A stretch of 64,000 nucleotides of DNA from Takakia lepidozioides (Eukaryota; Plantae; Bryophyta). The notes beneath the pieces are model-generated. The model saw nothing but the letters and a program-made list of their open reading frames with translations, had not been told where the DNA came from and did not search any database. Positions within the stretch are counted from its first letter, which is position 1. Each line of letters begins with the position of its first letter. Below, piece after piece: positions 6,294-42,400 of the stretch. Location of the stretch: positions 11,160,001 through 11,224,000 of the forward strand of contig CM060733.1 in NCBI GenBank assembly GCA_030704615.1, read 5' to 3'. The translations under genes and the position numbers were made by a program.

Positions 6294-6331
6294 CTTAACT
6301 AACTAAGGAACAAATTTTAGTCTCGCCAAAC

Positions 6332-6962: not shown

Positions 6963-7273
6963 GTAAGCAGCAGGATGCATCCATCATGGTGAATTTACAA
7001 GGTCGAGTAACACCAACAACAACAAGAAGCTACACATAATGTGCTTGAACAAAAAGCTATAGAGAATGGGCTTCCACCAGAAGAACACATGATCTCATTT
7101 TATTTGTGACAATTTCCATTGTGAGTAAAAGCCATTATATTATGCTTACTTTCAAATTAGTTGTCACTCCATCTTCAGTAGAATCAAGAGGTTGAATTAG
7201 TAGGAGCACAATCATTGGTAAAAAGTATAATTGTAACCTCATAAATCTATGTGAACAGTAAATTTAGGTTCAC

Positions 7274-7800: not shown

Positions 7801-7899
7801 ATACACGCCCAGTGGTTCATTCTTGGACTTGCTCCAAAATCACATGTTGAACACCCCTATTGCTGACTCAGAGAATGTTGCTGCAACATAAGACAACAG

Positions 7900-8645
7900 T
7901 ACACCAGATCCAAGTGTTCTCCACATCCTTAACCAAGGCAAACCCATGACTGACTATGAGGGATTCAAAGATATTTTCAAGCGGCGAAAGTAAAGAATAC
8001 TCCAAACAAACACTGGTCCGATAACAACGGCTAGTAGATGGCGGAATGCATGGATTCAGAAGTCTTGCAAACCACCAGGGAGGCTGTGAAGGCATCTATG
8101 TACATTTCAGTACTATGCGATGAGGTAACCTCAATTGATAACAAAATTGGGCATCTGATCAAGTTTATTGTATCCAAAATTGGCGAAGAATACCCATACT
8201 GGTCACATTGGAGAAACTTGGAGATGGTGCAAATGCGCCGGATGCATTGAAGAGAATTATAGTTGAAGCCCTCTTGATTGGTGGAGGTCCGACGAGAGAT
8301 AAATTGGCTTCCCAAATTTTGCCACAGATTGGTAAGAGGATTCAGCTCAATGGGCTTTTCTAGAGCCATAACACAATTGTTCTTCATCGTCATCTTAAGC
8401 AAAGAAGCTTGCAAGTCCAAATCTTGAGCATTCAAATGAGTTGGAACAGTCATATTACCAGCCCGCTTAGGAGAGCAATATGTCACTTTGATGACATTGA
8501 GATGGTGAAGATATCTCATGTCAGCATCATGGTGTGTCCAAAATTGGGGGTATGCAATACCCATATAGCCTCCATGAGATTTCGGGCTGGAAAACATCGA
8601 GCTTCCAACTTCCTTACCAGTTATGCTGTTGCATCCTTACACTGA
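7900..8645 (+). pseudogene. hAT-type (ZNF862-like) transposase remnant
   Basis: KHWSDNNG*.MAECM...YISVLCDEVTSIDN motif; frameshifted. Confidence 0.6.
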
Positions 8646-8668
8646 GTCTTGACATCAGCCAACACCCT

Positions 8669-18102: not shown

Positions 18103-19733
18103 TGTCATGCACCTAAGCATCGTGCCACAACATACATCGTTGTCCAACCACACTTCCTAGCATATAGTCCTAGAAAACCACGCCACAATAGATACGGAAA
18201 TGGTGAAAAGAGGAGAAACCACTCTATCACGTTATATAAGTCAAGCCAATGGCACCTTTGCTAAAGGACTCCACCATACAGACCTCACCCACTCTCCATC
18301 TCGAGAACTAGAGCTATGGCGGCGAGAGAGGCCTCGGGAGGCTCGACTAGAAGACGACAAGCCTGCCTACGTCTCACATGGAGATAACCTCTCCACGTCC
18401 CAAGTGAAGTTCGCCACCTCACTTGGCACTTGAAACCAAATGAAGTCCCAATGCCAACAAAATACAAATATAATGTATAATGTCCTAATTAACTAGAAAT
18501 AACTATTTCTAACTAATCACAAACAAAACCATGACAGCTGTCGTGCACCTAAGCATCGTGCCACAACATACATCGTTGTCCAACCACACTTCCTAGCATA
18601 TAGTCCTAGAAAACCACGCCACAATCGCCCCCCTAGCTGGTGATTAGGTCCCTCTAACACCAGATAGCTTGCAAGTATCCACCCCAATAAGATCATCGCT
18701 TGGTCTTCAATCGCACAAGTCCCAACACCTGAAGTCGATAGATCAAGAGGCCGGGTGCAAACGTAGCCCCATCGTTAGTCGCCTTTATGCAATCCATGTT
18801 CTTCAGTTGAGTATCAATGGCATTGAAGCCCCACTAGCTAGACCTTGGATCACTTGTTCGCCTCACTATTGTCATGTCCAATACCTCTGTCTAAGGCATC
18901 GTGGACACAACCATTCTCCGATAGGAAACTCCTCAAGTGGCAGTGTCAAGCATCCCATGTGCCACCCCCTTGAGCATTTGTCACACACCAACATGGTTGC
19001 GGCGCCACCAACATGCCCACATAGCATGCAACGCAACCCTGCAGGTACCACTGCAAGGTTGGGATCTATCCTCCCATCCACATGTGGAAGGTGACATAAT
19101 TGCGCACATGGTCCTTCCATACCATGCCATCTCGACCCTCCAGAATCAACACTCCTGAAGGCAACACCTCCCTGACCCTTAGAATCACATATCCTGCTAT
19201 GACATCCAAGGTCATAGGTGTTGTCTGCTGCAGATACACATAGGCCCCAGGGTGGAAACGCCGAACACTTGGCCGATATCCCCCTCCACGTATAGTGACG
19301 TACCTCAATGTGTCTCGGTATTGGGCAATAGCAAGGTTCTCAAAAGCCATAGGCATGACTCTCTTGAACAACTCTGCCCGCTGGGCACATGCTTGTGTCC
19401 ACACATCCGGATCATCAAGGTTGAGAACTACTGCAGCCTCCGTGCGAATAGATACAAGAAAATCCGGCTCTCGGCTGAAGAGAAGAAAGTAAGGTGAGAA
19501 GGAGGCAAGTGAAGCTTGTTTGCTGAACCTATAGCCCATAGCTAGCCGAAGGTCCCAATCTCCTAGGTGTCCCTTCTGCAAACCGTACTTGTGCAAACCT
19601 CTCTTGACTGTTTGAACAACTCTCTCCGCCAAGCCATCAGCCTTGGGATGATCCCGAGAAGTAATGCGGTGATCTATCAAGGCTCGCTTACACAAAGCCT
19701 GAAACTCCCCCAAGAACTCTCTCCCCTGGTCCG
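18103..19733 (-). mobile_element. 5'-truncated Ty3/gypsy element: integrase C-terminus, PHD finger, PPT and terminal repeat 18103-18623
   Basis: Closely similar inverted counterpart of ~41936-43554. HPKADGLAERVVQT integrase motif; CMLC..MLVCDKCSRGWHMGCL..WLCPRC. Confidence 0.92.
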
Positions 19734-19879
19734 GGAAGCTAAAGCAATATCTAAGCCCATAATGCTCTCATCCCATTACTCCCCCTATCTTCACACTCAC
19801 TCTTGCTTGAGCAATAGATAAGACTATCCTTAAAGAGCCTCTCAAATAACTCTCAAGAGCCCTCAAATTATTGCCATGA

Positions 19880-20480
19880 ACTTCTGAAATCTGCCCTCAA
19901 TCAGCCCCTAACATAGACCCACCGAGGTTCAAGAAGTTCGCAAACTTGGACTCCAAACAGTCCACCAAAAAGCCCTAGGCGCCCGCCAATTAGTGGCCTC
20001 CAAGGTCTCCAACCAGCCCTCACAATGGCTCCACAAGGCTGCCCAATATGGCCTCCAAGGACCTCCAACAGTCCTCCAACAGCCCTTAAGAAGCTCCTCA
20101 AATCTGCCAAGTATTGGCCTCCAAGGACCTCCAATAGTCCCCCAAAGAGCTCTTAGAAAGTTCCATAAATCTGCCCAATATGGGCCTCCAAGGACCTCCA
20201 ATCGTCCTCCAACCAGCCCTCACAAGGCTCCACAGGCTTGCAAAACATTGGCCTCGAAGGACCTCAAATAGTCCTTCAAACAGCCCCAAGCAGGCTCCAC
20301 AAACCTGCAAGATATTGGCTTCAATAGACTCCAAATAGTCCTCAAGCAGGCCCCAATACCTGCAAAATATTGGCCTCAATAGACCCCAAACAGTCCTCAA
20401 GCAAGAACCAATATCTGTTAGATATTGGCCCCCATAGACCCCAAATAATCCTCAAACAAGCTCCCAGAAGGCTCCAAAAG
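19880..20480. repeat. Degenerate tandem minisatellite (GGCCTCCAAGGACCTCCAA...-containing units)
   Basis: Recurrent ATTGGCCTC/AAGGACCTCCAA/CAGCCC motifs. Confidence 0.8.
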
Positions 20481-20494
20481 TATCCACAGTCAGT

Positions 20495-20935
20495 CGATTT
20501 TTCATCCGTCGCTGACCAAATCTCATCCAAAACCGCGATGTCTCATCTGCAGGTCCGATAATTTATCCGCCACGATAGTTCATCCGTCGGCGCGATATTT
20601 CATCCGTTGGTGCAGTTTCATCCGTCGCCGCGATTTTTCATCCGATGGTACGATAGTTCATCCGCTGACGCAGTTTCATCCGTCGCCACAATTTTTCATC
20701 CAATAGCACGATAGTTCATCTGCTGCCACAATTTCATCCGTTGCCTCAATTTTTCATCCGATAGCGCGATAGTTCATCCGCTGATGAGATTTCATCCGCT
20801 GGTGCAGTTTCATCTGTTGCCACGATTTTTCATCCGATAGCGCGATAGTTCATCCGCTGACAAGATTTCATCCACTACAACCGATTCTCATCCAAGAGCG
20901 CCGATTTTCATCCACTGGCTCAATAGTTCATCCGA
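20495..20935. repeat. Tandem array of TTCATCCG-core units (~20 bp, with higher-order ~60 bp periodicity)
   Basis: About 20 copies of (gatag/ttt)TTCATCCG in the same orientation. Confidence 0.9.
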
Positions 20936-20949
20936 TTGGACAATGGTGG

Positions 20950-21300: not shown

Positions 21301-21647
21301 GTCCTGATATGAACAAATGAACATAGGGTCATATATTATAATGTGTTCTTCCAACCATACACTTCATTATAAGCGAAATGCAAACAACAACCTTCAATGT
21401 GTGTGTGCATCAAATATGTCATTCAATAATTACATTTATGTGCGCAACGTACACGCATGCAAAGTTTCAAACCCAAACAAAATCATTTGCCCTCCCAATG
21501 ACGCATTCACCCTATCAACCAATTTTTGTTTATTAATGTGAAAGAAAATCCTCTCATGCCATTGCACCCAACAAACATATGTGGCTCAAGCTTCATTTTT
21601 TCCTACATGTGCTTAAATATATGTGCAACACCTGTACAAAGATCCAG

Positions 21648-22188
21648 CGTCTTTTAGTAAAGTACGTTTGAGAGGGATGTGATTCATACCTAGGCTGAAT
21701 AATTCTTTCAGCTTTGCGTGTTTAATAATGTTCAGGTCCATGGTACGTACGTGTTGCGTAGGTGTAGAACCAGACAGATGGAATTCTGATTTTGTATCCA
21801 CATCCCGAAAATCATGAAACCTCTTGGCACTGTCACATAGACAATCTGGTGAGTGAATCAAGTCTTGCATAAAGCAAAAATCACGGAAAACAACAGCAGG
21901 CTGATAGTATTCAGAACTGCTTTGTTTATGATATGTCCATCCAAAAACTATCTCATCGATGAGAATAGCTAAGTCATTTTGCCCAAATTCCAGAAAGGCT
22001 TCTTTTATCAGGTTCTTAGGGTGTATCCACTCCATACCACGGTTTGGGTATAACATATGAATGAATCCCAAAGGAGCAGGTTTTGCTGCCTGTTTTATGA
22101 ATTTCCTGCCATGGGCATGAGTTTCAATTTGTTTGCAACCATCCTCAAAGACATATAACGCATCTGCACATACAGAGTAGAGGAACAT
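21648..22188 (-). pseudogene. Truncated PLE reverse transcriptase N-terminus (copy 1)
   Basis: Identical to the start of 26108-28330 up to ...TLLKD, then unrelated sequence. Confidence 0.9.
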
Positions 22189-22205
22189 ACCAAAAAATGA
22201 GATTT

Positions 22206-23684
22206 TTACAGATCATTCCAAGATCCAAAGTCTCGTTTGTGTATTGGGGAGAACTCGTCAGTGATACGACGAGTCTTGTATGACTCCTGGCTGGCGATGT
22301 TGATGGTGGTACTGGAATTAGCACCCGAACCCCCAGTTGAGGACCGATTCGTTGCTCTTGAATTCTCAGAGGTGTTGGTAGAGTAATGTCCCCTGCCAGA
22401 GCGTCCTCCTCTTTGGTAGAGACCTCTTCCACGACCAGGGGTACCTCTTCCCCGGGCAGTGCTGCTCTTGCCTTGTTGAGGAGGCATCTGCCCCTCCATA
22501 CGCTGCCGTTTGTAGCTATTGAATTGTGGCCTGGGAAGGCTGTCTGAAAAAGACCCAGGTTTCACGAGTTTCTCAATGTATCTGGCCCCCTTGGATTCTC
22601 CTAACTTCGCAAGCAGCTTGGCTTGTGGGTCATTTGAGAATTCACAGGCTGCTTCCATTATGAACCCTCGGGTCATCTGGAAAGTAATTTGTGCCAGTAC
22701 AGCAGATCTGGCAGCCCGCATGATCCATACCAGAAAATTGTAATACTTGGTTTGCACCGAAGGATAGGTATCATCAGGGAAGAACACAATCAGATTGTTC
22801 AGCATATACCAAACCATATGGTCAAACCAAGCAACACTCCCAATGCAAGAAGAAGGTGCCCCTCCTTGTCCACAGTTGCATCTTATGTAGGGACGATGCC
22901 AATTGAAGAGTTGACTCTTATGGTTCTTGGATCTGGCTGATCCAGTCGGCAAATCATTTTTGGTCCTCAAGGTAAGGTTCTCACCTTTGTCACAGAGCTT
23001 GTAGTAGAAGGTCCTTAGTGGCCACGCCACGGCAATAGGTTCCTTTTTTATTCTCTGAAGACCCTCCTTAGCATCCTGTGCACATCTACTGCGTTCAGCA
23101 GGAGTTATGTTGCCCCATTTGACCCACATTTCAATGGAAATGGGTGCCAATAGGTTGATATTAGCATGTGGATGCCACATCATATGATCGTTATTGGCAA
23201 CCTCTAATTCAACTGCACGGGGAGGCAACCAAGGGACAAATTGCAGATTTCCAGGAGTGGCACCTGCTGCTCTTTCTTGTTCCACTTGTGAGAGTTCTAC
23301 TTGTTCACAGAATTCTCTCACTGCCTCTTTTTCTTCATCCGGTAAAATCATGTGCCCAAGGATTGGGTGATTACTTACAGAAGGGATGAAGTCTTTTTCA
23401 GAGGTGTTTGCAGATTTCTGCGTGGAGACAGTCTGGTCATCTTCCGGGTTCGCCATTCTAAGAGCAGCCTCAATGGCTGATCCCTTCTTTTCCCATTGTA
23501 TCAGCTCCTCGGCATCATCTTCCAGTACCTCAATCATTTTAGTATTGAACTCCTGGAGCTTCTCCAGGTACCTGCCATTCTTATTTGCCATGATGCCAAG
23601 TGCAACCCAATTTTCCAAAGCCAAAGTCTCAAGTAGTAATACGGGATTTTCATCACCTGAATTTTCCAAGGCCTCAGTGTCCAT
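22206..23684 (-). CDS. PLE ORF1, 492 aa, unknown function (copy 1)
   Basis: Intact ORF, protein identical to 28348-29826. Confidence 0.8.
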   Translation of the reverse strand: MDTEALENSGDENPVLLLETLALENWVALGIMANKNGRYLEKLQEFNTKMIEVLEDDAEELIQWEKKGSAIEAALRMANPEDDQTVSTQKSANTSEKDFIPSVSNHPILGHMILPDEEKEAVREFCEQVELSQVEQERAAGATPGNLQFVPWLPPRAVELEVANNDHMMWHPHANINLLAPISIEMWVKWGNITPAERSRCAQDAKEGLQRIKKEPIAVAWPLRTFYYKLCDKGENLTLRTKNDLPTGSARSKNHKSQLFNWHRPYIRCNCGQGGAPSSCIGSVAWFDHMVWYMLNNLIVFFPDDTYPSVQTKYYNFLVWIMRAARSAVLAQITFQMTRGFIMEAACEFSNDPQAKLLAKLGESKGARYIEKLVKPGSFSDSLPRPQFNSYKRQRMEGQMPPQQGKSSTARGRGTPGRGRGLYQRGGRSGRGHYSTNTSENSRATNRSSTGGSGANSSTTINIASQESYKTRRITDEFSPIHKRDFGSWNDL

Positions 23685-26107
23685 CTTTTGTAATGTAGCA
23701 TGGAAGTCACTTGGTGTGACTTGTGCGAGGGTTGCTTGTACAGCAGGAATTGGAGGAGGTAGAGGGGACTGATACCCCAGAGCTACGAGGTCCTCATTCC
23801 ATCTAGGGTCTCCTTTGGTGACCTTCTGTCAAAGTCCCCCCGAAAAAACTTGTCAGTGCATCATAATGAGAAGGTGAAAAGGAGATGGGTAGATGATGTG
23901 TACAAATACCACTAAGTACATTGGTCAAATAAAGAGAGAGAAGATATACATGTCATGTCAAGACATGGACAAGACCACTAAAGTCATTGTCATTGAAAGA
24001 CAAAGCAACCCTTTACAAGGCATCATCTAACAACCCCTTTTACCAACTCATTTGAACATCTTATAACTTTTCAGGGTATCTGAAAAAACAGGGTGGGAGG
24101 GCGGGATTCCTGGTCATTCATATCCTGAAAGCCCTATAAGTTGACATAAAGCATTCATTTTTTGTTGTTGACATGGGTCAAGCCTTACATAATCTAGTTC
24201 TTGAGCCATTCATCTTCCTAAAACAACATCCTGTGTAGGCGTGAAACTGATCTGTCAGTGCCAAGACACATGCAAGATTCATAAAGTAGAAGCGGGGCTA
24301 AGTTTTTATCAAGTATATGTAAGCCTGGATAATCATTCCAGGACTTCAAGATCAAAACTCTGCCATAGTATAAGGTAGGAAGCGCACAGCATCTACCAGC
24401 AAGCAGTTCTTGAAAACCAAAATACTGATGGGGTCAGGTCTGAAGGTGCTTCAGTGCCAAGTCATAAGCCAGATTTCTAACAAAACAAAACATAGGGCTG
24501 AGTACCCTTAAGTAGATATGGGCCTGAAGTGGTATTCCAGGGCCTCATAACAAGCTCTGCTAGTTAAAGAAATGAACTCAAAAACCATTGTCCCCTATCA
24601 TGCAATGAAATAGTGGTGATATAAGAGCCTTGAAGAATGTTTGTTATCACAAGGTCTATCTTCTGATCCATCAGAGCCAGGCCATGGTGTTTCATTTCAG
24701 AGCTTAGTTTCCATGCTGCCAGAGCTATAGTCGCAGCCATGTACCTTTGTTAAAAACATCCAGAGCTTTCAACAGAGATTTTGTTTTCTATGAAGTCCCT
24801 TGTGTGTCTTAACTCCAAAATGTATAAAAGTGGTTATCAAGAACCAAAAACAGGGATAAGGAGTAAGAAGGTGATCCTCATTAGAGCAGACTTGAAGCCG
24901 ATTTGAGGCAGCAAGATGGCAGATTTGAAACAACAGTTGGTATCAGCAGCTTCAGGCGGTAGCAGCAATCCCTTATGCATGAATCAGACTCTGCAAGCTT
25001 CAATAATTCAAGACAAGTGAAGACCCTCACCTGTGCCCGTCCCAAAAACCACCACATAGAGATGTGTGTTAGTGAGGATGCATCAGGTGAGTGGCAGGTT
25101 TTCACAGTTGCTATCCATGTCAGTGTTGAATTCCAAAGCATGTACAAATCGTAATCCAAGCAAGGGTACACTCAAAAGAAACCTTGAGCGTTTGCGGTAT
25201 GCCCTGCGCCATGGCGTCCAGTAGATGTCTCCAGCAGAACGCAATCAAAGTAGATAGAGATCAGCTCATACAGAAAGAGAGCAACATGTAATCTGTGGCT
25301 AAGTAGGGGTGGAGTACTTCCCAACGAGGAGTAAGAGCGCCGCTGCGAATTTAACAGAATCATAAATTTCTGAGCAGAGCGATCACTGCAATGTCGACTG
25401 CCAGAGAAGAATCTGTCTATCTGCCATTGCGCATCCCAAAAGCCAGCCATCACGAGTACCATGTAGCCGCAAGGGAGCAGGTTTACACGGCGCATCATCA
25501 AGGATCATAGAAGCACGAGTTCAGTGCTGTGAAATATGTCGGCCCGTTTAGGGCATATCTTCCCGATTTTTCATCCAGGGTGGATGAAAAATCACATTTT
25601 TAAGAGATGCACTTTGTTAATGGATGATATCCCATAAAAAGGTATCTTAGGGTTACGGTATAGGCTTAGGTTTAGTAACTGCCATCATTAATGATGGTAC
25701 ATATTACTACCTCTTGGATTTTTAGAATAGGTCACCAGTATTCATGTATTTCATCCAGTTTAGATGAAAGAAGCAAATAGTAAATATCAGGGCCAAATGA
25801 AATCCAAAAAGTTATAGAGGGAGAGGGAGAGAGGGAGAGAGAGGGACCCACCAGCCAATCCCCTGGCATGGCATAACCTTACGGAATGAGTGTGGTATGC
25901 ACTCACCCCGTAAGGGAGTGCATACCAGACCTCTTCTCATAAGGTTTCCCTCTTCCATGTAGTTCTATCATCGGATTATATTATCCAAGGGAGTAGAATC
26001 CTACATCCTCATTTCCTCGGCTCATGAATGAAACATTAGTATAAAAATGTGACATAGCAAAACTAGTATAGTATTACTAGCAAAGAACATAGAGTTCAAT
26101 GGTATAC

Positions 26108-28330
26108 TTAGCTCTGGATAGGTTTTTGGAAAATACCTTTCAGTTTCTCAATAAGCTCATGTACAGGGAAGAACAAGCCAGGGAATGAGCCTTGTTCAAG
26201 GAACCTTGTCAAGATACGAGCAAGTTTCCTGGTCTTAAAACCATTCCTCCCAAGAGTGTTAATCAGAATGCTGCATTCCTTCCAAGCCAAAACAGCATTG
26301 CTGGAAATGTATAGAATAGGCACAGCTTGTGAAATCACAATGTTGTAGGATTGATTCACAGGCCTATTGGATAAGAACTGGATATATTGAGTGTAAGAGA
26401 AAGGAAGTAGTCTTCTCTTGTCATATTTCTGGAAATAGAACTCACCTGTGTCACTGTTTGAGACTGTAATCTGGATATTCATGAAACAAGCTTCCAACCC
26501 CACGTATTGGGAATCGGTTTTGGTACGTAGTAGCTCAGGTTTGATCTCCACTACATTGAGTGGGTAGATCCACCAAGGGTTGTTGCTGCTTCTGTCTGCC
26601 TTTGGGTCCAGGAACAGCATTGCATCACCCACATTCAGCCAGCATATATCATCAATGTATCTGAAGGCAGATTTAAACAAAGGCATGAGCTGGAATTGTC
26701 CCAAAGCTGCAAGCCTTAAGATGAATTTGATCTCGTAAGAAAGGAAGTACATGTTGCACCATAATGGTGAGCATGAAAAACCCATAGGTATTCCAGAAAT
26801 CTGCTGCCACACACGGTCCCCTAAGGCAACAAAACAGTGTGACATAAGCCATTTGTGGAGCATAAGTAACTTGGCTTCAGAAAGCTCAATCCAAGTACCT
26901 GATTTCGGGGAGGACGTGCCCCACCTACTTTTCCGGAAAGTACCGTTTTTGGCTGGAATCCATAGAGTATGACGTGCCCGGGGGTGAGACATATGGTGTT
27001 GCTGGAATGCAATCTTCACCACGTATTCAATGGCGTCCCCTAGGTTATCCTGACCTGTCAAAGGTATGTTCTCATAGCATTGTGTAATGTCAGCCACAAA
27101 GATGTTATGGACTTTTGCAGGCAGGTTTAGTGTAAAGTCAGTGATGGAATCAATAATCCAATACATAGCAGTAGATACTTTGAAAAATGGCTCATAAGTA
27201 TCCAGCCTTGTTTTGGTCCATTCTTTTACCAATGGTAGAAGATCCATGGTAGCTCTTGTAAGGAGGCTAGCTAGTTCACTGAAAACACATTTGTGGGCAT
27301 TGGTAATCCATCTGTATTTTTTCTTATGTAGCTTGTAGATTCCCATAATGTAAGGTAGTCTACAGGAGGGAACAGGTATCTCCGGAATCAAACTCTGTAT
27401 TTCCACGGAAATGTTTCCTAGAACAAGGTCAGGTGGCAGCCATACCTCATCTTGCTTGCATGGTGTAAAGTCTTTACCCATCAATCTGTGGAATGCTTGG
27501 ATTCTTACGTGCTTCACACACATAAAACATACATTGTTGTTAGCCTTGTCAAGACCAGAGAAATACAGGTGATTGAGAAGCCATGAAAGTTCGTCTTTTG
27601 CCTCTTTTACAGTAAGAGGATTGCGCTCATGGTGAGTGAAGTCATACCTTCTTCTGCCGGCTTTTTGTTTCAGTCTATCCCAGCATGTGTTTTTTACCCA
27701 TTGGTTGCAGGTTGCAGCCCAAGATTCACATGGGTCTATATGCAAAATTTCACAGGTTCTGTGGAAAGCCAAAGACACTTGTTCAACAACGTCTTTTAGT
27801 AAAGTACGTTTGAGAGGGATGTGATTCATACCTAGGCTGAATAATTCTTTCAGCTTTGCGTGTTTAATAATGTTCAGGTCCATGGTACGTACGTGTTGCG
27901 TAGGTGTAGAACCAGACAGATGGAATTCTGATTTTGTATCCACATCCCGAAAATCATGAAACCTCTTGGCACTGTCACATAGACAATCTGGTGAGTGAAT
28001 CAAGTCTTGCATAAAGCAAAAATCACGGAAAACAACAGCAGGCTGATAGTATTCAGAACTGCTTTGTTTATGATATGTCCATCCAAAAACTATCTCATCG
28101 ATGAGAATAGCTAAGTCATTTTGCCCAAATTCCAGAAAGGCTTCTTTTATCAGGTTCTTAGGGTGTATCCACTCCATACCACGGTTTGGGTATAACATAT
28201 GAATGAATCCCAAAGGAGCAGGTTTTGCTGCCTGTTTTATGAATTTCCTGCCATGGGCATGAGTTTCAATTTGTTTGCAACCATCCTCAAAGACATATAA
28301 CGCATCTGCACATACAGAGTAGAGGAACAT
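26108..28330 (-). CDS. Penelope-like reverse transcriptase (Naiad/Chlamys-type motifs), 740 aa
   Basis: CLC...HVRTMDLNII..LKELFSLG, LDKANNN, KLHK..YRWI, ADITQCYENIP, QISGIPMGFSCSP, FRYIDDI, YDKRRLLPF. No GIY-YIG motif seen at either end. Confidence 0.9.
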   Translation of the reverse strand: MFLYSVCADALYVFEDGCKQIETHAHGRKFIKQAAKPAPLGFIHMLYPNRGMEWIHPKNLIKEAFLEFGQNDLAILIDEIVFGWTYHKQSSSEYYQPAVVFRDFCFMQDLIHSPDCLCDSAKRFHDFRDVDTKSEFHLSGSTPTQHVRTMDLNIIKHAKLKELFSLGMNHIPLKRTLLKDVVEQVSLAFHRTCEILHIDPCESWAATCNQWVKNTCWDRLKQKAGRRRYDFTHHERNPLTVKEAKDELSWLLNHLYFSGLDKANNNVCFMCVKHVRIQAFHRLMGKDFTPCKQDEVWLPPDLVLGNISVEIQSLIPEIPVPSCRLPYIMGIYKLHKKKYRWITNAHKCVFSELASLLTRATMDLLPLVKEWTKTRLDTYEPFFKVSTAMYWIIDSITDFTLNLPAKVHNIFVADITQCYENIPLTGQDNLGDAIEYVVKIAFQQHHMSHPRARHTLWIPAKNGTFRKSRWGTSSPKSGTWIELSEAKLLMLHKWLMSHCFVALGDRVWQQISGIPMGFSCSPLWCNMYFLSYEIKFILRLAALGQFQLMPLFKSAFRYIDDICWLNVGDAMLFLDPKADRSSNNPWWIYPLNVVEIKPELLRTKTDSQYVGLEACFMNIQITVSNSDTGEFYFQKYDKRRLLPFSYTQYIQFLSNRPVNQSYNIVISQAVPILYISSNAVLAWKECSILINTLGRNGFKTRKLARILTRFLEQGSFPGLFFPVHELIEKLKGIFQKPIQS

Positions 28331-28347
28331 ACCAAAAAATGAGATTT

Positions 28348-29826
28348 TTACAGATCATTCCAAGATCCAAAGTCTCGTTTGTGTATTGGGGAGAACTCGT
28401 CAGTGATACGACGAGTCTTGTATGACTCCTGGCTGGCGATGTTGATGGTGGTACTGGAATTAGCACCCGAACCCCCAGTTGAGGACCGATTCGTTGCTCT
28501 TGAATTCTCAGAGGTGTTGGTAGAGTAATGTCCCCTGCCAGAGCGTCCTCCTCTTTGGTAGAGACCTCTTCCACGACCAGGGGTACCTCTTCCCCGGGCA
28601 GTGCTGCTCTTGCCTTGTTGAGGAGGCATCTGCCCCTCCATACGCTGCCGTTTGTAGCTATTGAATTGTGGCCTGGGAAGGCTGTCTGAAAAAGACCCAG
28701 GTTTCACGAGTTTCTCAATGTATCTGGCCCCCTTGGATTCTCCTAACTTCGCAAGCAGCTTGGCTTGTGGGTCATTTGAGAATTCACAGGCTGCTTCCAT
28801 TATGAACCCTCGGGTCATCTGGAAAGTAATTTGTGCCAGTACAGCAGATCTGGCAGCCCGCATGATCCATACCAGAAAATTGTAATACTTGGTTTGCACC
28901 GAAGGATAGGTATCATCAGGGAAGAACACAATCAGATTGTTCAGCATATACCAAACCATATGGTCAAACCAAGCAACACTCCCAATGCAAGAAGAAGGTG
29001 CCCCTCCTTGTCCACAGTTGCATCTTATGTAGGGACGATGCCAATTGAAGAGTTGACTCTTATGGTTCTTGGATCTGGCTGATCCAGTCGGCAAATCATT
29101 TTTGGTCCTCAAGGTAAGGTTCTCACCTTTGTCACAGAGCTTGTAGTAGAAGGTCCTTAGTGGCCACGCCACGGCAATAGGTTCCTTTTTTATTCTCTGA
29201 AGACCCTCCTTAGCATCCTGTGCACATCTACTGCGTTCAGCAGGAGTTATGTTGCCCCATTTGACCCACATTTCAATGGAAATGGGTGCCAATAGGTTGA
29301 TATTAGCATGTGGATGCCACATCATATGATCGTTATTGGCAACCTCTAATTCAACTGCACGGGGAGGCAACCAAGGGACAAATTGCAGATTTCCAGGAGT
29401 GGCACCTGCTGCTCTTTCTTGTTCCACTTGTGAGAGTTCTACTTGTTCACAGAATTCTCTCACTGCCTCTTTTTCTTCATCCGGTAAAATCATGTGCCCA
29501 AGGATTGGGTGATTACTTACAGAAGGGATGAAGTCTTTTTCAGAGGTGTTTGCAGATTTCTGCGTGGAGACAGTCTGGTCATCTTCCGGGTTCGCCATTC
29601 TAAGAGCAGCCTCAATGGCTGATCCCTTCTTTTCCCATTGTATCAGCTCCTCGGCATCATCTTCCAGTACCTCAATCATTTTAGTATTGAACTCCTGGAG
29701 CTTCTCCAGGTACCTGCCATTCTTATTTGCCATGATGCCAAGTGCAACCCAATTTTCCAAAGCCAAAGTCTCAAGTAGTAATACGGGATTTTCATCACCT
29801 GAATTTTCCAAGGCCTCAGTGTCCAT
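28348..29826 (-). CDS. PLE ORF1, 492 aa, unknown function (copy 2); probably extends 5' to a splice acceptor near 29968
   Basis: Intact ORF with a coiled-coil-like acidic N-terminus, a central H..CNC..C..H cluster and a C-terminal RGRG/RGG tract. It ends 17 nt before the RT ATG. Confidence 0.8.
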   Translation of the reverse strand: MDTEALENSGDENPVLLLETLALENWVALGIMANKNGRYLEKLQEFNTKMIEVLEDDAEELIQWEKKGSAIEAALRMANPEDDQTVSTQKSANTSEKDFIPSVSNHPILGHMILPDEEKEAVREFCEQVELSQVEQERAAGATPGNLQFVPWLPPRAVELEVANNDHMMWHPHANINLLAPISIEMWVKWGNITPAERSRCAQDAKEGLQRIKKEPIAVAWPLRTFYYKLCDKGENLTLRTKNDLPTGSARSKNHKSQLFNWHRPYIRCNCGQGGAPSSCIGSVAWFDHMVWYMLNNLIVFFPDDTYPSVQTKYYNFLVWIMRAARSAVLAQITFQMTRGFIMEAACEFSNDPQAKLLAKLGESKGARYIEKLVKPGSFSDSLPRPQFNSYKRQRMEGQMPPQQGKSSTARGRGTPGRGRGLYQRGGRSGRGHYSTNTSENSRATNRSSTGGSGANSSTTINIASQESYKTRRITDEFSPIHKRDFGSWNDL

Positions 29827-32031
29827 CTTTTGTAATGTAGCATGGAAGTCACTTGGTGTGACTTGTGCGAGGGTTGCTTGTACAGCAGGAATTGGAGGAG
29901 GTAGAGGGGACTGATACCCCAGAGCTACGAGGTCCTCATTCCATCTAGGGTCTCCTTTGGTGACCTTCTGTCAAAGTCCCCCCGAAAAAACTTGTCAGTG
30001 CATCATAATGAGAAGGTGAAAAGGAGATGGGTAGATGATGTGTACAAATACCACTAAGTACATTGGTCAAATAAAGAGAGAGAAGATATACATGTCATGT
30101 CAAGACATGGACAAGACCACTAAAGTCATTGTCATTGAAAGACAAAGCAACCCTTTACAGGCATCATCTAACAACCCCTTTTACCAACTCATTTGAACAT
30201 CTTATAACTTTTCAGGGTATCTGAAAAAACAGGGTGGGAGGGCGGGATTCCTGGTCATTCATATCCTGAAAGCCCTATAAGTTGACATAAAGCATTCATT
30301 TTTTGTTGTTGACATGGGTCAAGCCTTACATAATCTAGTTCTTGAGCCATTCATCTTCCTAAAACAACATCCTGTGTAGGCGTGAAACTGATCTGTCAGT
30401 GCCAAGACACATGCAAGATTCATAAAGTAGAAGCGGGGCTAAGTTTTTATCAAGTATATGTAAGCCTGGATAATCATTCCAGGACTTCAAGATCAAAACT
30501 TTGCCATAGTATAAGGTAGGAAGCGCACAGCATCTACCAGCAAGCAGTTCTTGAAAACCAAAATACTGATGGGGTCAGGTCTGAAGGTGCTTCAGTGCCA
30601 AGTCATAAGCCAGATTTCTAACAAAACAAAACATAGGGCTGAGTACCCTTAAGTAGATATGGGCCTGAAGTGGTATTCCAGGGCCTCATAACAAGCTCTG
30701 CTAGTTAAAGAAATGAACTCAGAAACCATTGTCCCCTATCATGCAATGAAATAGTGGTGATATAAGAGCCTTGAAGAATGTTTGTTATCACAAGGTCTAT
30801 CTTCTGATCCATCAGAGCCAGGCCATGGTGTTTCATTTCAGAGCTTAGTTTCCATGCTGCCAGAGCTATAGTCGCAGCCATGTACCTTTGTTAAAAACAT
30901 CCAGAGCTTTCAACAGAGATTTTGTTTTCTATGAAGTCCCTTGTGTGTCTTAACTCCAAAATGTATAAAAGTGGTTATCAAGAACCAAAAACAGGGATAA
31001 GGAGTAAGAAGGTGATCCTCATTAGAGCAGACTTGAAGCCGATTTGAGGCAGCAAGATGGCAGATTTGAAACAACAGTTGGTATCAGCAGCTTCAGGCGG
31101 TAGCAGCAATCCCTTATGCATGAATCAGACTCTGCAAGCTTCAATAATTCAAGACAAGTGAAGACCCTCACCTGTGCCCGTCCCAAAAACCACCACATAG
31201 AGATGTGTGTTAGTGAGGATGCATCAGGTGAGTGGCAGGTTTTCACAGTTGCTATCCATGTCAGTGTTGAATTCCAAAGCATGTACAAATCGTAATCCAA
31301 GCAAGGGTACACTCAAAAGAAACCTTGAGCGTTTGCGGTATGCCCTGCGCCATGGCGTCCAGTAGATGTCTCCAGCAGAACGCAATCAAAGTAGATAGAG
31401 ATCAGCTCATACAGAAAGAGAGCAACATGTAATCTGTGGCTAAGTAGGGGTGGAGTACTTCCCAACGAGGAGTAAGAGCGCCGCTGCGAATTTAACAGAA
31501 TCATAAATTTCTGAGCAGAGCGATCACTGCAATGTCGACTGCCAGAGAAGAATCTGTCTATCTGCCATTGCGCATCCCAAAAGCCAGCCATCACGAGTAC
31601 CATGTAGCCGCAAGGGAGCAGGTTTACACGGCGCATCATCAAGGATCATAGAAGCACGAGTTCAGTGCTGTGAAATATGTCGGCCCGTTTAGGGCATATC
31701 TTCCCGATTTTTCATCCAGGGTGGATGAAAAATCACATTTTTAAGAGATGCACTTTGTTAATGGATGATATCCCATAAAAAGGTATCTTAGGGTTACGGT
31801 ATAGGCTTAGGTTTAGTAACTGCCATCATTAATGATGGTACATATTACTACCTCTTGGATTTTTAGAATAGGTCACCAGTATTCATGTATTTCATCCAGT
31901 TTAGATGAAAGAAGCAAATAGTAAATATCAGGGCCAAATGAAATCCAAAAAGTTATAGAGGGAGAGGGAGAGAGGGAGAGAGAGGGAGTGAGTGAGAGGG
32001 AGAAATCAGGAAACAAAAATAAAAAGAGGAA

Positions 32032-32087
32032 GGGGGGGGGGGGGTGACTGAGTAGCAACTGCTCAGTCACTCCCCCCCCCCCCCCCC
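32032..32087. repeat. Palindromic junction G-tract-GTGACTGAG-(9 nt)-CTCAGTCAC-T-C-tract
   Basis: Perfect 9-bp inverted repeat at 32044-32052 and 32062-32070, extended by poly-G/poly-C and by GA-rich/CT-rich flanks. Confidence 0.9.
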
Positions 32088-34406
32088 ACCTTTTTGTTTT
32101 TTCTTTGTTGCCTCCTCTCTCCCTCTGTCTCCCTCTCTACTGGGAATTGGCAGTTTGCTATCAGTGTGGATTTTTTGTTCCTCTATCAGGTTTTTTCATC
32201 CATACCGGATGAGCCACCAGGATGGACACTGAATTACCTCTAGGATGGTTCTTTTGGCCTTTTCATTCCTCCTCTATTGACTCTCATCCATACCGGATGA
32301 GTCATCATGGCAGAAAAGAATTACCTCTATGGAGGTTGCCAACAACATCCTGTTTTTCCATCCGTACCGGATGAAAAACTACCAGGGTGATAATTTTTCA
32401 TTCCTCTTTTATTGACTCTTGTTATCCATATCGGATGGTCTGGAAAGGAATGATAGAATTACCTAGATGGAGGTAAGGCGCTGCCACGGATGATATTCCC
32501 TACTTTTTCATCCTGACACATGTGAGCTGTCTATGGGTGATGTGATTATGACCTGGAATTGATCTTTACTACCCCTAATTATGATTAATTACGGTGGAAA
32601 CCCTAACCCCTACCCCAAAACCTATTTTTAACCTTGCTACGGATGAAATCCGTCAGGGTTTATGGACTCGTCCTACCATTTTTCATCCGCGAATGAATAA
32701 TCGGGGGACAACCCTATGTCGTCTCTCTCGCTATCAGAAGCACGCGATGTGCTTCTGAGCTCGCGAGGAGAATGTTCTGGCGGGCGTGCTTCGGTGGCTG
32801 CCCCGTTTGTGGTGTCGTACCCATGCTGGACGAGCACCTGGGGGGACGCAAAGGCGGCGCCTTGTCTCTCTTGCAGCAGGAAACACCGCTATGACAGCAG
32901 TGGCATCTTCCCTCCTCTGGTTTTTTCTGTGCTTAGCAAGGATGCTTATGATCTTTTTTAGTGCCTTGCGTTTGTGCCTGCTTTCCTTCATTGCTTATGT
33001 GCTTTGTGGAGGCGGCTTGCTGCGGGTGGTGATGGCGCATAACCCTCTTCCCCAATCGCTTAAGGTGCCTTTGGAGTTTAGGGATTCTCATGTTCTTATC
33101 TCTTTCTCTTGCTTTTGAGTTTCTTAGTTGACATCGATGATAAGTATGAGGGTCTGTGATTCACCTGGGGTTCCACAATCCTCACTAACCTGTTGGTTTT
33201 TGTGGGGGCTTGTGATGGGACCAGGTGAGGACCTCACCTACTTTGAACTTTCTTGAGCATGCAGATTGGGATATGGGCTGAGGAGACCTATGGGTTTGTG
33301 CACTGTGAGGTGGCTGCTGCCTGCAGCCCCGATTTCAACCCAACTGCCCCTGGCTTGACATGCTACAGCCTGCGTTTTGGCCTTTGTCGTTCTGCCACCG
33401 ATGCGCAGCTCGGCCTGACTGGCCTGTTTCCTGATGCTTGCATACAAACCATACCCTACCTTTTGATCTTTGACAGCAAAGCCTGTGGATTATTAAGCTA
33501 GGTTGTAAGTTCTTTTGGCCAAAGAGGATCTGGTTTTTGGTGGTATGTTTTTGGCGGTTTTGGGTGACTATGGACCAGGGGGCCTTGAAGTTTATGGCGG
33601 CAGCTTGGTAGGGTACTGCCCTGCTCCTTTTCAGGCCTGCTTCTGATGTGTACTGGATCATAGTAAGGTGTTCTTTGCACGTCTTAGCATGGAACTCTTG
33701 TAGGATGAGGATGGTGAGCTACAATGGGATCCTACCTATAGTTTTGGCTCTGTCATGACATCAGGCCTATGACCTGCAATCTGGTTTTTTATATACAAAA
33801 GAGGCTGGATCTCGACTGTTCATGCTGCTTGTTTGTACAAGTCTTGAACCTACAATTTGACAAGCTGCATTCACATTCCCTTGATACCTTGTATGATCAC
33901 ATGTCTCGGGGTGAATACAAATGATATGGAATCTATTTCATCTTGCTCAAGTTGGACTGCTTGGTGGCATACTGAGATTCTGACAAACTGCAGGCTGGTC
34001 CTTATGCCTTGGCTGATGCATGACCTGCCATAATTAATGGCTGAAATGGTAGGCTGCTAGTATGTGTACAGGCTGAACCAAGAGGCCTTGCAGCCTGCAC
34101 AGGGACACCAATATCTTATCTTGTCCCACACATGAACACATGATTCATTGGCCAAGATGGCCGGATCTCGGGTGTTCAAGATGCTTGCATCCCCTACATG
34201 AACAAACCCCGCCCTCCCACCATGTTTTATCATGACTGATTGGATGATGTCAATTCATGGGAAGCTATGACAAGAATGGAAATGTTAGATGGTGCCCTGT
34301 TTTGGGTTGTTTATGTCTTTAATTGACAATGACCCTAGTGGGTCTTGTCCATGTCTTGACATGACATGAATATCTTCCCTCTCCCTCTCTCTTTTTAACT
34401 TTTTCT

Positions 34407-35268: not shown

Positions 35269-35654
35269 CAGAGAGGGACAGAGAGAGGGAGAGATCAGGA
35301 AACCAAAATACAAAAAAAATGGGGGGGGGGGGGGGGGGGGATTGGGCCCGTGGTGCTCAGCAGCTGCTGGTGGTGCTCAGTCACTCCCCCCCACCTATTT
35401 CTTTTCTCTTTGTTGCCCCCTCTCGAGACCCCGAGCACTTGCTGCTCTCAGCCCCCGACATGCTTGGTTTTTTTTGTTTTTGATCTGGAATGTTCCTAAT
35501 GAGGCCAACTTGTGGGTTTGCATGACAGGTGCCAGCTTATGGGGAAAGAGAAGAAGTCACCTGCCCCAAAGAAAGGGGCGGACAATCCGTTTGCTCTGCC
35601 GGCACGTGTGACGCGCCAGGGCGTCTCACGGCTAACCGCCCGTCGACAGCCGCA

Positions 35655-36430
35655 GGCCCTGGAGAAGGGTAAAAGGTCCATGGTGCCATTGTCAAATTTG
35701 AAATTGTACCCGATGTCATTTTGAACAATACCCTTGTGGGCATGTGACAGTATTGAGATACAAAGGGAGTGTTTGAGAATATGGCTGAATGAAATGTCGT
35801 GTCCTGGAGTGTGATGATGGCGGGATATTCTCCAACATGGATGCGGGATGGAGGCATTGGAGACCTATGAACAAATGATGCGATGATGCTGGAAGGGGTA
35901 AAGCCAGACCTGGCCACGTTCGTTTGTATATGCAACGCGTGTGTGAGCCTGGCAGCCTTGGAAAAGGGCAAAGCGGTTCATGGTGACATCATTAGAGCTG
36001 GAATTGTACCCGACGTCATTATGAACAATACCCTCGTGGACATGTATGCGAAATGTGGGTGCATCGCGGATGCGAAGGGAGTTTGCAACTATGGCTGAAC
36101 GATGTTTGCGGGGTATGCACAGCAAGGCCACGGGAAGGAGGCTTTGGAGACCTATGATCAAATGATGGCGGAAGGGGTGATCATGTGCAAGGCTGGCAGC
36201 CCTGGAAAAGGGCAAAGAGGTCCATGGTGACATTGTCAGAGCTGGAATTGTACACGATATCATTCTGAATAGTACTCTCGTGGACATGTATGCAAAATGT
36301 GGGTGCATCAAGGATGCAAAGGGAGTGCTCAAAAGTATGGCTGAACGAGATGTGGTGTCGTGGAGTGCGATGATTGCAGGATATGCATAGCAAGGGCGCG
36401 AGATGGAGGCTTTGGAGACCTATGAGCACC
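35655..36430 (+). pseudogene. PLS-class PPR pseudogene fragment
   Basis: GVKPDLATFV..ACVSLAALEKGKAVHGDII..NTLVDMYAKCG repeats with frameshifts and stops. Confidence 0.9.
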
Positions 36431-39479: not shown

Positions 39480-42400
39480 GACCAGAACATCCAAACTCAA
39501 TTGCAAGAGCCGGGTAGGCGGTTCGTTGAGCCCAACCTACACCGCAACTTGCCACGACCCCCTAGGCTAGTATGCCGTCATCCTGGCCGCGCGCGACCAG
39601 GGCTCGTCACTACTCCACAGTCAGATTGGGCGGACAAGGCCCAAGAGGTTGCTATCTAGCAACCAAAGGATTCGTCTCCTACCTCCAAGCTTGGTGTACC
39701 CAAGGTTGTAGTCACTGAAGACAATTGGGAACCAGATATTGGACCTACAGTCACCGGAGGAGAGAGACGGAGGATCCAGCGATTTCTAAGGGCTTATAGA
39801 AATTGCTTTGCCTTCGGTTTGAAGGATTTGGGGAGTTTGAAGGGTCAGGAGATTCGTATTGATTTGACAAGTGACACGCCAATCTTTCGAAGGCCCTACC
39901 GGTATAGTGACATAGAGAGGTCATTGATCCAGTCACGGACTATGGAGTTGTTCGAAGCTGGATTGATGGAGTTGTCAAGCGGGGAGTATGTCTCGGCAAC
40001 GGTGATGCCAGCTAAGAAGGATATCTATGGCAATTGGACAGAAATAAGGATGTGTGGGGACTATCGTCTTGTGAACTGTCAGACTAAGTCCGATAGATAT
40101 GCCATGCCAACTCCAGAGGAGATCTTTGATGCCATTGGGCATGCAAAGGTGTTTAGCACATTGGATTTGCGATCCGGTTACCACCAATTGCCAATCAAAG
40201 AGGCTGACAAGCAAAAGACGACATTTTGGGGGATTGACCAACATGAGAAGGATTGTTTGTACCAATGGCGGTTCTTACCGTTTGGGTTGAAGAACGCTCC
40301 TGCAGAGTTTCAGAGAGTCATGGATAGGATTCTCGCGGGGCTAGACTTCACCCGGTGCTACATTGATGACATCATCGTCTTTAGTGCTACGGTTGAGGAG
40401 CATGAAAGACACCTTCAGGTGGTGTTTGAGAGCTTGAGAGTGCACGGGTTGAAACTGCACCCCAAAAAGTGCAAGTTCTTCCACAATCAAATTGAGTATC
40501 TGGGCCACATGATATACCCTGGAGGATTGGGTGTTCAACAGACAAAGGTGGAGGCCATTGCATGCATTCCACGCCCCATGGATGTGAGCAAAATTCGTGC
40601 TTTCATGGGATTGGCAAACTACTATCGACGGTTTGACAAGGGATTTAGCAGCATTGCAAAGGTTCTTACCAAGTTGACCAAGGTGGGTCAGGAGTGGCAG
40701 TGGGAGGAGGAGCAGGAGGAAGCCTTTGAGGAACTCAAGGCTCGATTGACTTCTGCACCTATTCTGAGGTGGCCTATTCGGGGGCGGCCTTTCCAGCTAC
40801 ATACGGATTGGAGTATGTTGGGGATTGGAGCAGTGCTCACACAGGTGGATGATGAGGGAAGAGAGTTTGTAGTGGCATATGTTAGCCGCTCGAACAATGA
40901 TGTCGAGACGAAGTATAGTTCCTATGAAGGGGAGTGTCTAGCTACGGTATGGGCAGTGACACATTTCAGATGCTACCTCTATGGCAATCTCTTCACCCTT
41001 GTCACGGATCACCAACCATTGAAGTGGTTGATGGAGTCAGACAAGCTTACAGGGAAGCTTGCACGGTGGGCACTTATGCTTCAAGAGTACAACTTTCAGG
41101 TGGTGCATCGAGCCGGTATTGTCAATCGGGATGCAGATGGATTGAGTCGTAATCCATGCACGAGCAAGCATAATGATACTGGAGCTCGGTGGCATGGTGA
41201 GACGGATGAAGAGATGGTGTCAGGATGGCATGCATTGGCCTTTTTGTGCATTCTAGCAATGGGAGCTCAAGCTGGTCCATCCCATGCGATTGGTCATGTA
41301 GATGGCGTGCATGACAATCCAGAGACTAATGAGGAGTTTGGTGGTGCTAAGGATGTGCATGAAGATGCAGCCGTGTTGGCATACCTTCTTACCGGAGAGA
41401 CGGCAGCCAGTGTGACTGTTAAGGAGAGAGATCGGGTCCTACAACGAGGCAAGAGGTTCAAGTGGGAGGGGACTCATTTACTCCGGGTTTGGGAGGATGG
41501 ACGAGTGAGGATTGTGCCTCATCCAACACAACGAGCGCAATTGGTATGCCATGCCCATGAGGAGTTGGGACATTTTGGGATGCGGCGCACTCATAGTTTG
41601 CTGCAAGGGCAGTATTGGTGGCGGGGCATGCACACGGATGTGCAACAGTTAGTGGTAAGGTGCATGGTGTGTGATAGAGTGCGGGCTTCTTTCAACGCCC
41701 CTATTCCACAATTGCATCCTTTACCCATTATGGGTTTGGGCTATCGTTGGAGTCTTGACTTCGCAGGCCCATTGCCATTGACGATTCGTCATAACAAGTA
41801 TGTGCTGGTGATGGTGGAATACTTTTCCAAATGGATTGAACTGGTGGCATTGCCTGACAAGGCAAGTGGGGGGGTTGCGTATGCATTCTTAGATCGAGTG
41901 CTAAGCCATTTTGGTGCTCCAGCCGAGGTACTCACGGACCAGGGGAGAGATTTCTTGGGGGAGTTTCAGACTTTGTGTGAGCAAGCCTTGATAGATCACC
42001 GCACTACTTCTAGGGATCATCCCGAGGCTGATGGCTTGGCGGAGAGAGTTGTTCAGACAGTCAAGAGAGGTTTGCGCAAGTACGGTTTGCAGAAGGGACA
42101 CCTAGGAGATTGGGACCTTCAGCTGCCTTGGCTAGCTATGGGCTATAGGTTCAGCAAACAAGCTTCACTTGTCTCCTTCTCACCTTACTTTCTTCTCTTC
42201 GGCCGAGAGCCGGATTTGCCTGCATCTATTCGCAGGGAGGCTGTAGTAGTTCTCAACCTTGATGATCCGGATGTGTGGACACAAGCATATGCCCAACGGG
42301 CAGAGTTGTTCAAGAGAGTCATGCCTATGGCTTTTGATAACCTTGCCATTGCCCAACACCGAGACACATTGAGGTACGCCACTATACGTGGAGGGGGATA

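Follow-up and report, generated by a model that had tools for sequence, protein, structure and literature searches.

How can a retroelement that has kept a complete reverse transcriptase and shows no endonuclease enter new sites in a genome? The question is raised by a locus in the bryophyte Takakia lepidozioides (assembly GCA_030704615.1, contig CM060733.1, positions 11,160,001 to 11,224,000 of the forward strand), a stretch of 64,000 nucleotides (nt) which is called here the window and from whose first letter all positions are counted. Two long open reading frames (ORFs) of a Penelope-like retroelement (PLE) lie there on the minus strand. From the results given below we think it likely that the element belongs to a bryophyte family in PLE-X, the endonuclease-less branch of the Chlamys-type PLEs, and that this copy was amplified recently and apparently still has its coding capacity.

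Reverse transcriptase, ORF1 and the search for an endonuclease

The coding part of the element consists of the following two features.

26108 to 28330, minus strand: ORF2, a Penelope-like reverse transcriptase (RT) of 740 amino acids (aa) with an ATG start, CxC (C116/C118), HVRTMDLNII, DKA (261-263), D414, D560-D561 and the YDKR/SNRP thumb
28348 to 29826, minus strand: ORF1, 492 aa counted from the first ATG, with a CxCX8C (C269, C271, C280) and WFDH core, an RGG-rich tail and a C-terminal SP..(G/K)R...W(D/N)

Both frames are uninterrupted, as had been claimed in the original prediction, which was made from the sequence alone, and the chance probability of an open frame of 740 codons is about 4e-16 (simple arithmetic with roughly 3 stops per 64 codons). 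The spacer from ORF1 to the RT is 17 nt, and the RT frame is -1 relative to that of ORF1. The element had also been described as intact, which holds for the openness of both frames and less well for the start of ORF1, which is not fully certain due to 48 open upstream codons without an ATG.

All RT motifs quoted in that prediction (CxC...HV.T.DL.II, DKA and YDKR) are present, in the forms PDCLCDSAKRF (CLC at 116-118), HVRTMDLNII, GLDKANN and QKYDKRR. The CxC (zf-CDGSH-like) motif lies upstream of the RT, its C116 and C118 being invariant in 26 aligned relatives, and is followed by H146 (HV.T) and GLNHIP. The same alignment shows H146, DKA, D414 of motif A, Q/G of motif B and D560-D561 of motif C to be invariant, and the PLE-specific DKA, D414, QxxGIPMG, D560-D561 and YDKR/SNRP are all invariant or nearly so. 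The spacing from D414 to Q510 is about 95 residues, in the segment between motifs A and B where an insertion-in-fingers domain would be expected. Judged by these residues the RT looks catalytically competent, and its CxC and DKA motifs support the assignment to the Naiad/Chlamys type. General profile searches said little about it: the Pfam RVT_1 match was weak and sub-threshold, the top PDB profile match was telomerase RT, spanning the segment between motifs A and B and not significant (E 0.05), and a PDB phmmer search gave no match.

An exhaustive representative search returned 1875 RT relatives. About 54 of them are close (43-50% identity), are found on short ENA, JGI and Logan contigs and are mostly about 590-790 aa long, which leaves no room for a nuclease. 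The named relatives nearest the top were Selaginella moellendorffii EFJ12422 and a series of Chara braunii proteins; a third, word-indexed protein search with the RT profile reached no named Chlamys or Naiad proteins. In a tree from a quick maximum-likelihood search, rooted on the C-terminal GIY-YIG PLE and supported by SH-like approximate likelihood ratio tests (SH-aLRT), the window RT belongs to a 100% clade of 9 rows of plant-like metagenome sequences. This clade is sister (93% SH-aLRT) to the Selaginella and Chara rows, whose PLE-X reference labels are organism names and not the curated consensus sequences of the original authors. The N-terminal GIY-YIG PLE P0242 lies outside a 99% clade of 40 rows, and in those of the 40 that were checked no endonuclease was found.

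Families of the Chlamys group that lack an endonuclease have been described from Selaginella and Chara as PLE-X (Craig et al. 2021, PMC8557442). They are defined by a unique N-terminal extension with a CxCX1-8C motif, and a few strong BLASTP matches in mosses were mentioned (PMC8557442). We assign the window element to PLE-X because its nearest named relatives are from Selaginella and Chara, because the core of ORF1 is homologous to the extension, and because the RT tree and the published definition agree with this. The lineage, which had been taken for a poorly described one, and its domain content are thus already in the literature as PLE-X (PMC8557442). It had been thought to lie outside any described family of the same layout; much of this layout is in fact that of PLE-X, from which the separate ORF1 cistron differs.

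The homology of ORF1 is seen in its core CxCX8C...WFDH, which carries RCNCGQGGAPSSC and can be aligned to the N-terminal sequence of two proteins, Chara braunii GBG83558 (E 2e-12; KCACLGC there) and EFJ12422 (E 2e-6; CVCSCFNERPGC there). The C-terminal parts of both proteins are relatives of the window RT. At sequence level ORF1 is homologous to the N-terminal extension (CxCX1-8C) of PLE-X, but it forms a cistron of its own, which lies upstream of the RT and has an RGG-rich tail. The earlier view of an unrelated ORF1 has to be given up. Its homologues (33-37% identity) accompany the RT in the related loci L001-L003, L006/L007 and L015 and include a protein of the liverwort Calypogeia fissa. 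At L014 a 5'-cut ORF beside the RT is a candidate for a further homologue. ORF1 is conserved up to its last residues, SP..(G/K)R...W(D/N)-stop.

A structure model of full-length ORF1 was unusable (predicted local distance difference test, pLDDT, 44), while that of the core domain reached a pLDDT of 75 and a predicted template modelling (TM) score of 0.77. N-terminal segments are helical in the model, with low confidence. For the core model no PDB match was found by Foldseek, the best Z in a wide VIA-align search was 3.6, and there was no ESM Atlas match by shape (TM below 0.3) or by features; the ORF1 sequence likewise gave nothing credible in Pfam or PDB profile searches. The Cys/His core, the RGG tail and the helices modelled in the N-terminal segments lead us to propose that ORF1 may bind zinc and RNA and act as a chaperone or targeting protein. 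That it is a nuclease is neither supported nor excluded.

An ORF1-like protein was also found in a sister clade, represented by L008 (1780-5689) and L009 (1909-5818), with an RT (P0074) that is 36% identical. This protein of 518 aa has an RGG tail, has no CxC..C and sits 4 nt downstream of the RT, not upstream. Judged by these two loci and the window, the gene order appears permuted within the group. The two ends of the L008 contig share a repeat of 119 nt, the length of its assembly k-mer, which means that the unit was assembled as a tandem or a circle.

The claim that the element has no endonuclease was examined in all frames of 21600-32200 and stood. GIY-YIG was not detected by Pfam in the RT, in its first 115 aa, in ORF1 or in ten other open pieces (57-138 aa) of the unit. 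Phmmer with the GIY-YIG domains of two real PLEs against 345 stop-free pieces of at least 20 aa, from both strands of 21600-32200, gave a best E of 1.6, and a GIY..YIG pattern had no match in the stop-free pieces of this region among the matches listed. As a positive control, Pfam finds the N-terminal GIY-YIG in the relative P0242 at 1.3e-6, and it also identifies a C-terminal one in the relative P0238. One could still propose that the element is not truly nuclease-free, and that GIY-YIG was replaced by a new module for nicking or targeting DNA, formed by the Cys/His core of ORF1 or by a domain that splicing conceals, which steers insertion to CT microsatellites. ORF1 does hold the place that GIY-YIG has in N-terminal-endonuclease PLEs such as P0242, its core is conserved from Chara to bryophytes, its fold is unmatched and hence excludes no function, and the insertions are dispersed and interstitial. 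We nevertheless consider such a module very improbable: no nuclease family or fold emerged from Pfam, PDB sequence profiles, Foldseek, VIA-align or the Atlas, the invariant ORF1 columns show no evident acidic/His catalytic constellation, the ORF1-like protein of the related L008 clade lacks the Cys motif, and the RGG tail suggests RNA binding.

Tandem array, probable pseudo-LTRs and unit boundaries

Positions 21645-25846 repeat 27787-31987 with 3 substitutions and 1 indel in 4202 nt, that is, with a period of 6141/6142 nt. The element thus forms a head-to-tail array of 1.68 units which are 99.9% identical and have CT-rich boundaries, and this near-identity bears out the claim that it is young. 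The unit proposed earlier, 25847-32057, is a real element seen in a rotated view of the 6141/6142-nt tandem unit. Besides the two ORFs we distinguish the features below (UTR, untranslated region; LTR, long terminal repeat).

29827 to 30075, minus strand: inferred 5' end and 5' UTR of the full-length unit, of which 29827-29970 extends the ORF1 frame
30076 to 31987, minus strand: probable upstream pseudo-LTR of 1.9 kb (earlier taken for a leader), which differs from 23934-25846 only in 2 substitutions and 1 indel; it has a CT-rich tract at its start and ...CATGACATGTATATCTTCTCTCTC at its end
25847 to 26107, minus strand: proximal 3' UTR with the conserved structured RNA element, ending ...GGCTGGTGGGT just ahead of the CT tract
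25816 to 25846, minus strand: internal CT-rich (AGAGGG-type) tract at the head-to-tail junction, where relatives hold pure (CT)12-28
23934 to 25815, minus strand: probable downstream pseudo-LTR, forming the distal part of the 3' UTR in the full-length unit; its 3' end, 23934, corresponds to the point where the inverted solo copy stops
21645 to 23933, minus strand: start of a further tandem unit, with 5' UTR, another ORF1 of 492 aa (22206-23684) identical to the first, and about 181 codons from the start of the RT
31167 to 31230, repeated at 25026-25089, minus strand: conserved pseudo-LTR core, CACCTG..TCACTAAC..ATG..GGGCACAG/GTGAGG, present in all relatives with enough flank
32060 to 34387, plus strand: solo pseudo-LTR from a related family, in inverted orientation, diverged and without ORFs; it is colinear with minus-strand positions 32054-30072 (nhmmer 3e-33)
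31968 to 32141, no strand assigned: palindrome (GA-rich, A-rich, poly-G / poly-C, T-rich, CT-rich) which joins the array head-to-head to the inverted copy

Where the unit begins was judged from the point at which the repeated block stops. L001 carries a repeat (1-1255 = 6347-7601) which ends 116 nt before ORF1 and gives way to unrelated DNA at 7601; the block of L015 ends likewise at about 6480. The repeat of the distant L010 ends 255 nt before ORF1, and the inverted solo copy of the window stops at a 43-nt block, 95% conserved, which reads ...CATGACATG(T/A)ATATCTTC(T/C)CTCTC. These four independent observations place the real terminus 100-255 nt upstream of ORF1. With this fixed terminus the unit would run from 30075 to 23934 on the minus strand and comprise a short 5' UTR, ORF1, the RT and a 2.2-kb 3' UTR. 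The 1.9-kb block upstream of ORF1 is then most likely a pseudo-LTR, i.e. the 3' UTR of the preceding tandem copy, and probably supplies the promoter. It had been regarded as a long RNA leader; its end at a fixed point before ORF1, followed by unrelated DNA, makes a pseudo-LTR more probable. Measured from 31987 to 23934, the stretch is 8054 nt long. Pseudo-LTRs and tandem or inverted arrangements are a trait of PLEs, seen here as the 1.68-unit tandem and the head-to-head inverted solo copy, and the same design is found in the relatives L001, L010 and L014. L010 itself (108-9963) is a distant endonuclease-less relative (26% identity) with two ORFs and a 100%-identical tandem of 1.8 units.

Two small public sequence runs, whose type could only be guessed as RNA, gave assembled contigs that matched parts of the stretch. 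These contigs reach a summed depth of 400-700 on the pseudo-LTR and hardly cover the ORFs, which fits an excess of pseudo-LTR-only copies; with contigs of uncertain type, the depth is no copy number. The pseudo-LTR core lies within the zone of highest contig depth, 30990-31389, and contains motifs resembling splice signals, namely a branch-point-like ACTAAC and CAG/GTGAGG. It may serve as a promoter, as a first exon or as some RNA signal. Elsewhere this core of about 65 nt was located in L001 (28-90 and 6374-6436), L005 (608-670), L006 (624-685), L014 (5170-5232) and L015 (5198-5260).

The proximal 3' UTR contains a structured RNA element (25840-25960; -61.9 kcal/mol, z -5.95). In the window, L001, L005, L006, L014 and L015 the RT is followed by a stable structure, GGTGGG(T/A)C and then (CT)n of 12-28 repeats, which is degenerate in the window. 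RNAalifold assigned 28 pairs to the hairpin, 5 of them with compensatory changes, all of which contrast the window with the other five sequences and so amount to a single contrast. CT-rich sequence is found at the 3' end of the unit, at the internal tract and at the outer junctions, while the 3' end and flank of L010 share a different microsatellite of (TGC/ATC) type.

This arrangement can also be read in the way of the original prediction, with a unit that starts at the CT tract, has a genuine 5' leader of 2.1 kb and ends with the hairpin, GGTGGGT and a (CT)n tail. Arrays would then arise by priming on the (CT)n tail of a resident copy, and the downstream 1.9-kb block would be an incomplete next unit. 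Such a layout is suggested by the very stable, conserved RNA structure directly before the variable (CT)n (12-28 repeats) in six family members, an arrangement like that of non-LTR elements, which have a 3' recognition structure and a tail of simple repeats. The left ends of both the array and the inverted solo copy lie at the CT tract as well, and the L006 contig spans from (CT)n to (CT)n. We find it unlikely all the same, since it needs a trailing unit broken at one fixed point 100-255 nt before ORF1 in L001, L015, L010 and the inverted copy, with unrelated DNA beyond the break in every case, and since target-primed copies normally lose their 5' end and not their 3' end.

The near-identity of the units, together with the abrupt stop of the last one at 21645 and the lack of an ATG ahead of the conserved N-terminus of ORF1, could also come from an assembly artefact or from a plain segmental duplication of one dead insertion, the open frames reflecting youth and not activity. 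We consider this extremely improbable, as the design recurs in independent metagenome contigs of the diverged relatives L001, L010 and L014, and as four differences between the units oppose a collapsed or duplicated assembly of one sequence. Beyond 21645, where the further unit breaks off inside the RT into unrelated DNA, satellite arrays with units of 55-67 nt and of 58 nt were seen (19997-20938).

A module made of a CTGCTCAGTCAC-like sequence, C13-20, a T-rich and a CT-rich part has three copies in 31968-32141 and 35272-35400, each beside an inverted (poly-G) partner with which it forms a palindrome. Two copies lie at the left ends of pseudo-LTR copies, and the third, which no pseudo-LTR follows, has an (AG)51 microsatellite and G20 next to it. 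These palindromic modules could be a preferred target or sequence made during insertion.

Translation and a possible route of integration

The frame of ORF1 stays open for 48 codons upstream of its ATG and encodes there residues conserved in the family (PRWNEDLVALGYQSPLPPP..QAT) with no ATG, which is also missing in the relatives L012 and L013. The RT frame relative to ORF1 is -1 in the window, +1 in L001, L005 and L010 (in L010 with a 44-nt overlap) and 0 in L006. In L001 and L005 the conserved RT start (VCTD...GR) has no ATG, and the position of the L006 ATG, 21 nt after the ORF1 stop, is held by CTG in these two loci. In the window, L001, L005 and L006 ORF1 ends in its conserved motif and a stop. 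The RT may therefore be translated as a second cistron, by reinitiation or from a non-AUG start near the ORF1 stop and not by one fixed frameshift, with splicing as a further possibility.

A single programmed frameshift was rejected because the relative frame varies among close relatives; in L001, moreover, the stretch from the ORF1 stop to the conserved RT start holds a stop codon in the RT frame. A simple intron between ORF1 and RT was rejected as the main route, the GT after the stop and the AG before GAT GCG being only 46 nt apart and out of frame, and in-frame alternatives would remove the conserved C-terminus of ORF1. For the start of ORF1 itself there is a lead to an intron of 1.2 kb, from CAG/GT at 31172/31171 in the pseudo-LTR core to AG at 29969-29968, which puts an ATG at 31198-31196 (27 nt before the GT) in phase with ORF1; this phase fails in L001 and L006. 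Joints in the contigs of the public runs were few, each came from a single contig and they had no consistent pattern, so they give no evidence on splicing or RNA ends.

It was stated earlier that the element must integrate by a non-standard route. This is a reasonable inference which the literature has already made, as PLEs without an endonuclease must obtain 3'-OH groups by other means (Craig et al. 2021, PMC8557442). The route we propose would start from 3'-OH ends that already exist in the DNA of (GA/CT)n microsatellites. Where a break or a replication intermediate offers a GA-rich genomic 3'-OH, this would anneal to the CU-rich 3' end of the element's own RNA, and the annealed DNA end would prime reverse transcription by the telomerase-related RT. 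The 5' junction would be formed by microhomology at the internal (CT)n tract of the element. Templates longer than one unit could lead to solo 1.9-kb, 8.05-kb and longer tandem forms. The whole would be an interstitial analogue of the telomere-end priming of Athena and Coprina.

It is more speculative, and in our opinion a good deal less likely to be true than false, that the PLE-X ORF1, with its CxCX8C/His core of unmatched fold and its RGG tail, is a new integration factor which replaced GIY-YIG. ORF1 and the telomerase-related RT would between them enable the element to prime on free (GA/CT)n ends, and to join to them, through its own CU-rich RNA ends, and the pseudo-LTR would carry the promoter and the first coding exon of ORF1. 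To this combined scheme we give a small chance.

Several observations weigh against the placement in PLE-X, the pseudo-LTR layout or the priming route as set out above. A stop separates ORF1 from the RT here, whereas the published PLE-X ORFs are joined by an intron, a joining which the authors inferred from Selaginella gene models (PMC8557442). Published PLE-X also carry canonical hammerheads (PMC8557442), and none was found by Rfam (E-value mode) in 19-34 kb of the window or in L001, L002 and L005 (three loci, two distinct elements), where minimal or dimeric forms could escape the models; the pattern CTGANGA..GAAAC likewise had no match. The RT tree left out curated references for Naiad, Chlamys, Athena, Coprina and telomerase RT, its endonuclease-bearing outgroups are single unnamed metagenome proteins, and several of its branches are long. 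The two sets of contigs from the public runs, only guessed to be RNA, mostly match the pseudo-LTR at 90-95% identity. Directly behind the RT, the hairpin and the GGTGGGTC(CT)n after it have the look of a classic 3' end with tail, which favours the layout of the original prediction, and the cut of the last array unit inside the RT (21645) is explained by neither layout. Finally, neither an empty site nor a target-site duplication was seen, which leaves the priming mechanism a proposal.

Surroundings and comparison with known systems

A pair of inverted repeats of 1.65 kb with 92% identity (18103-19736 and 41932-43554) brackets the region at a distance of 22 kb; these are probably two copies of another transposon. 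Diverged repeat arrays (about 72-88% identical in self-BLASTN) lie at 35652-36428 and 44302-46970, and one array unit, read by eye in frame, resembles a pentatricopeptide (PPR) repeat (MIAGYAQ..G...EAL), which is in keeping with a host among the land plants. In L001 a fragment of a Replitron-type HUH endonuclease (9000-9230) is situated 1.4 kb past the end of the related element.

The lineage, the absence of a nuclease and the extra N-terminal protein were already published, so the discovery is incremental. What the window and 16 related loci add is a young, apparently intact, multi-copy family in a land plant with a clear anatomy, in which ORF1 and the RT are accompanied by a structured element on the 3' side, by CT-rich tracts at every boundary that was seen and by pseudo-LTRs of 1.9 kb with a conserved core; the PLE-X ORF1 family is also documented in liverwort-type sequences. 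Craig et al. (2021) left open how PLE-X reach genome-wide or ribosomal DNA (rDNA) sites without a nuclease (PMC8557442). With the window family as a test system this question of nuclease-free insertion becomes testable.

Among known systems, the bicistronic non-LTR elements of L1 type are similar in having an upstream ORF with a helical N-terminus and a basic RNA-binding tail, a very short spacer, an RT cistron and a simple-repeat 3' end. They differ in that their RT class is unrelated, the window element has no APE or RLE nuclease, and ORF1 is non-homologous. Athena and Coprina share the lack of an endonuclease, in some cases an accessory ORF1, and a likely logic in which the 3' end is complementary to the priming DNA end. 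Those elements are, however, telomere-associated, with reverse-complement telomeric repeats and without CxC, whereas the window RT groups with sequences of Chara and Selaginella. In accordance with a site that is not telomeric, no CCCTAAA dimer, even with one mismatch, was found in the 64 kb.

The Chlamys and Naiad PLEs with an N-terminal endonuclease resemble the window element in the CxC linker, DK(A), the pseudo-LTRs and perhaps a long segment between motifs A and B, and also in their bias to microsatellite targets, including (C)n, and in mostly having no hammerhead. Their defining N-terminal GIY-YIG is absent from the window element, which has ORF1 in its place.

The closest likeness in domain content is to PLE-X itself (PLE-X1_sTam and PLE-X1_cBra), which has an RT with CxC and without GIY-YIG, a homologous extra N-terminal part with CxCX1-8C, and tandem and inverted arrangements. 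The Selaginella PLE-X occupies a precise 28S rDNA site and that of Chara is distributed genome-wide (PMC8557442), and the interstitial distribution of the window family is as in Chara. In contrast to the Selaginella site, the window element is tied to CT/GA microsatellites: an Rfam scan of 19-34 kb gave no rRNA match, and the flanks consist of CT/GA microsatellite and poly-C/G. Further differences are the bryophyte host, the 1.9-kb pseudo-LTRs with a conserved core, and ORF1 as a separate, stop-ended ORF with an RGG-rich tail where the published extension was reported as intron-joined to the RT. The features in which this family is a variant of published PLE-X are the lack of a canonical hammerhead, the separate ORF1 with its RGG tail and the CT-microsatellite boundaries.

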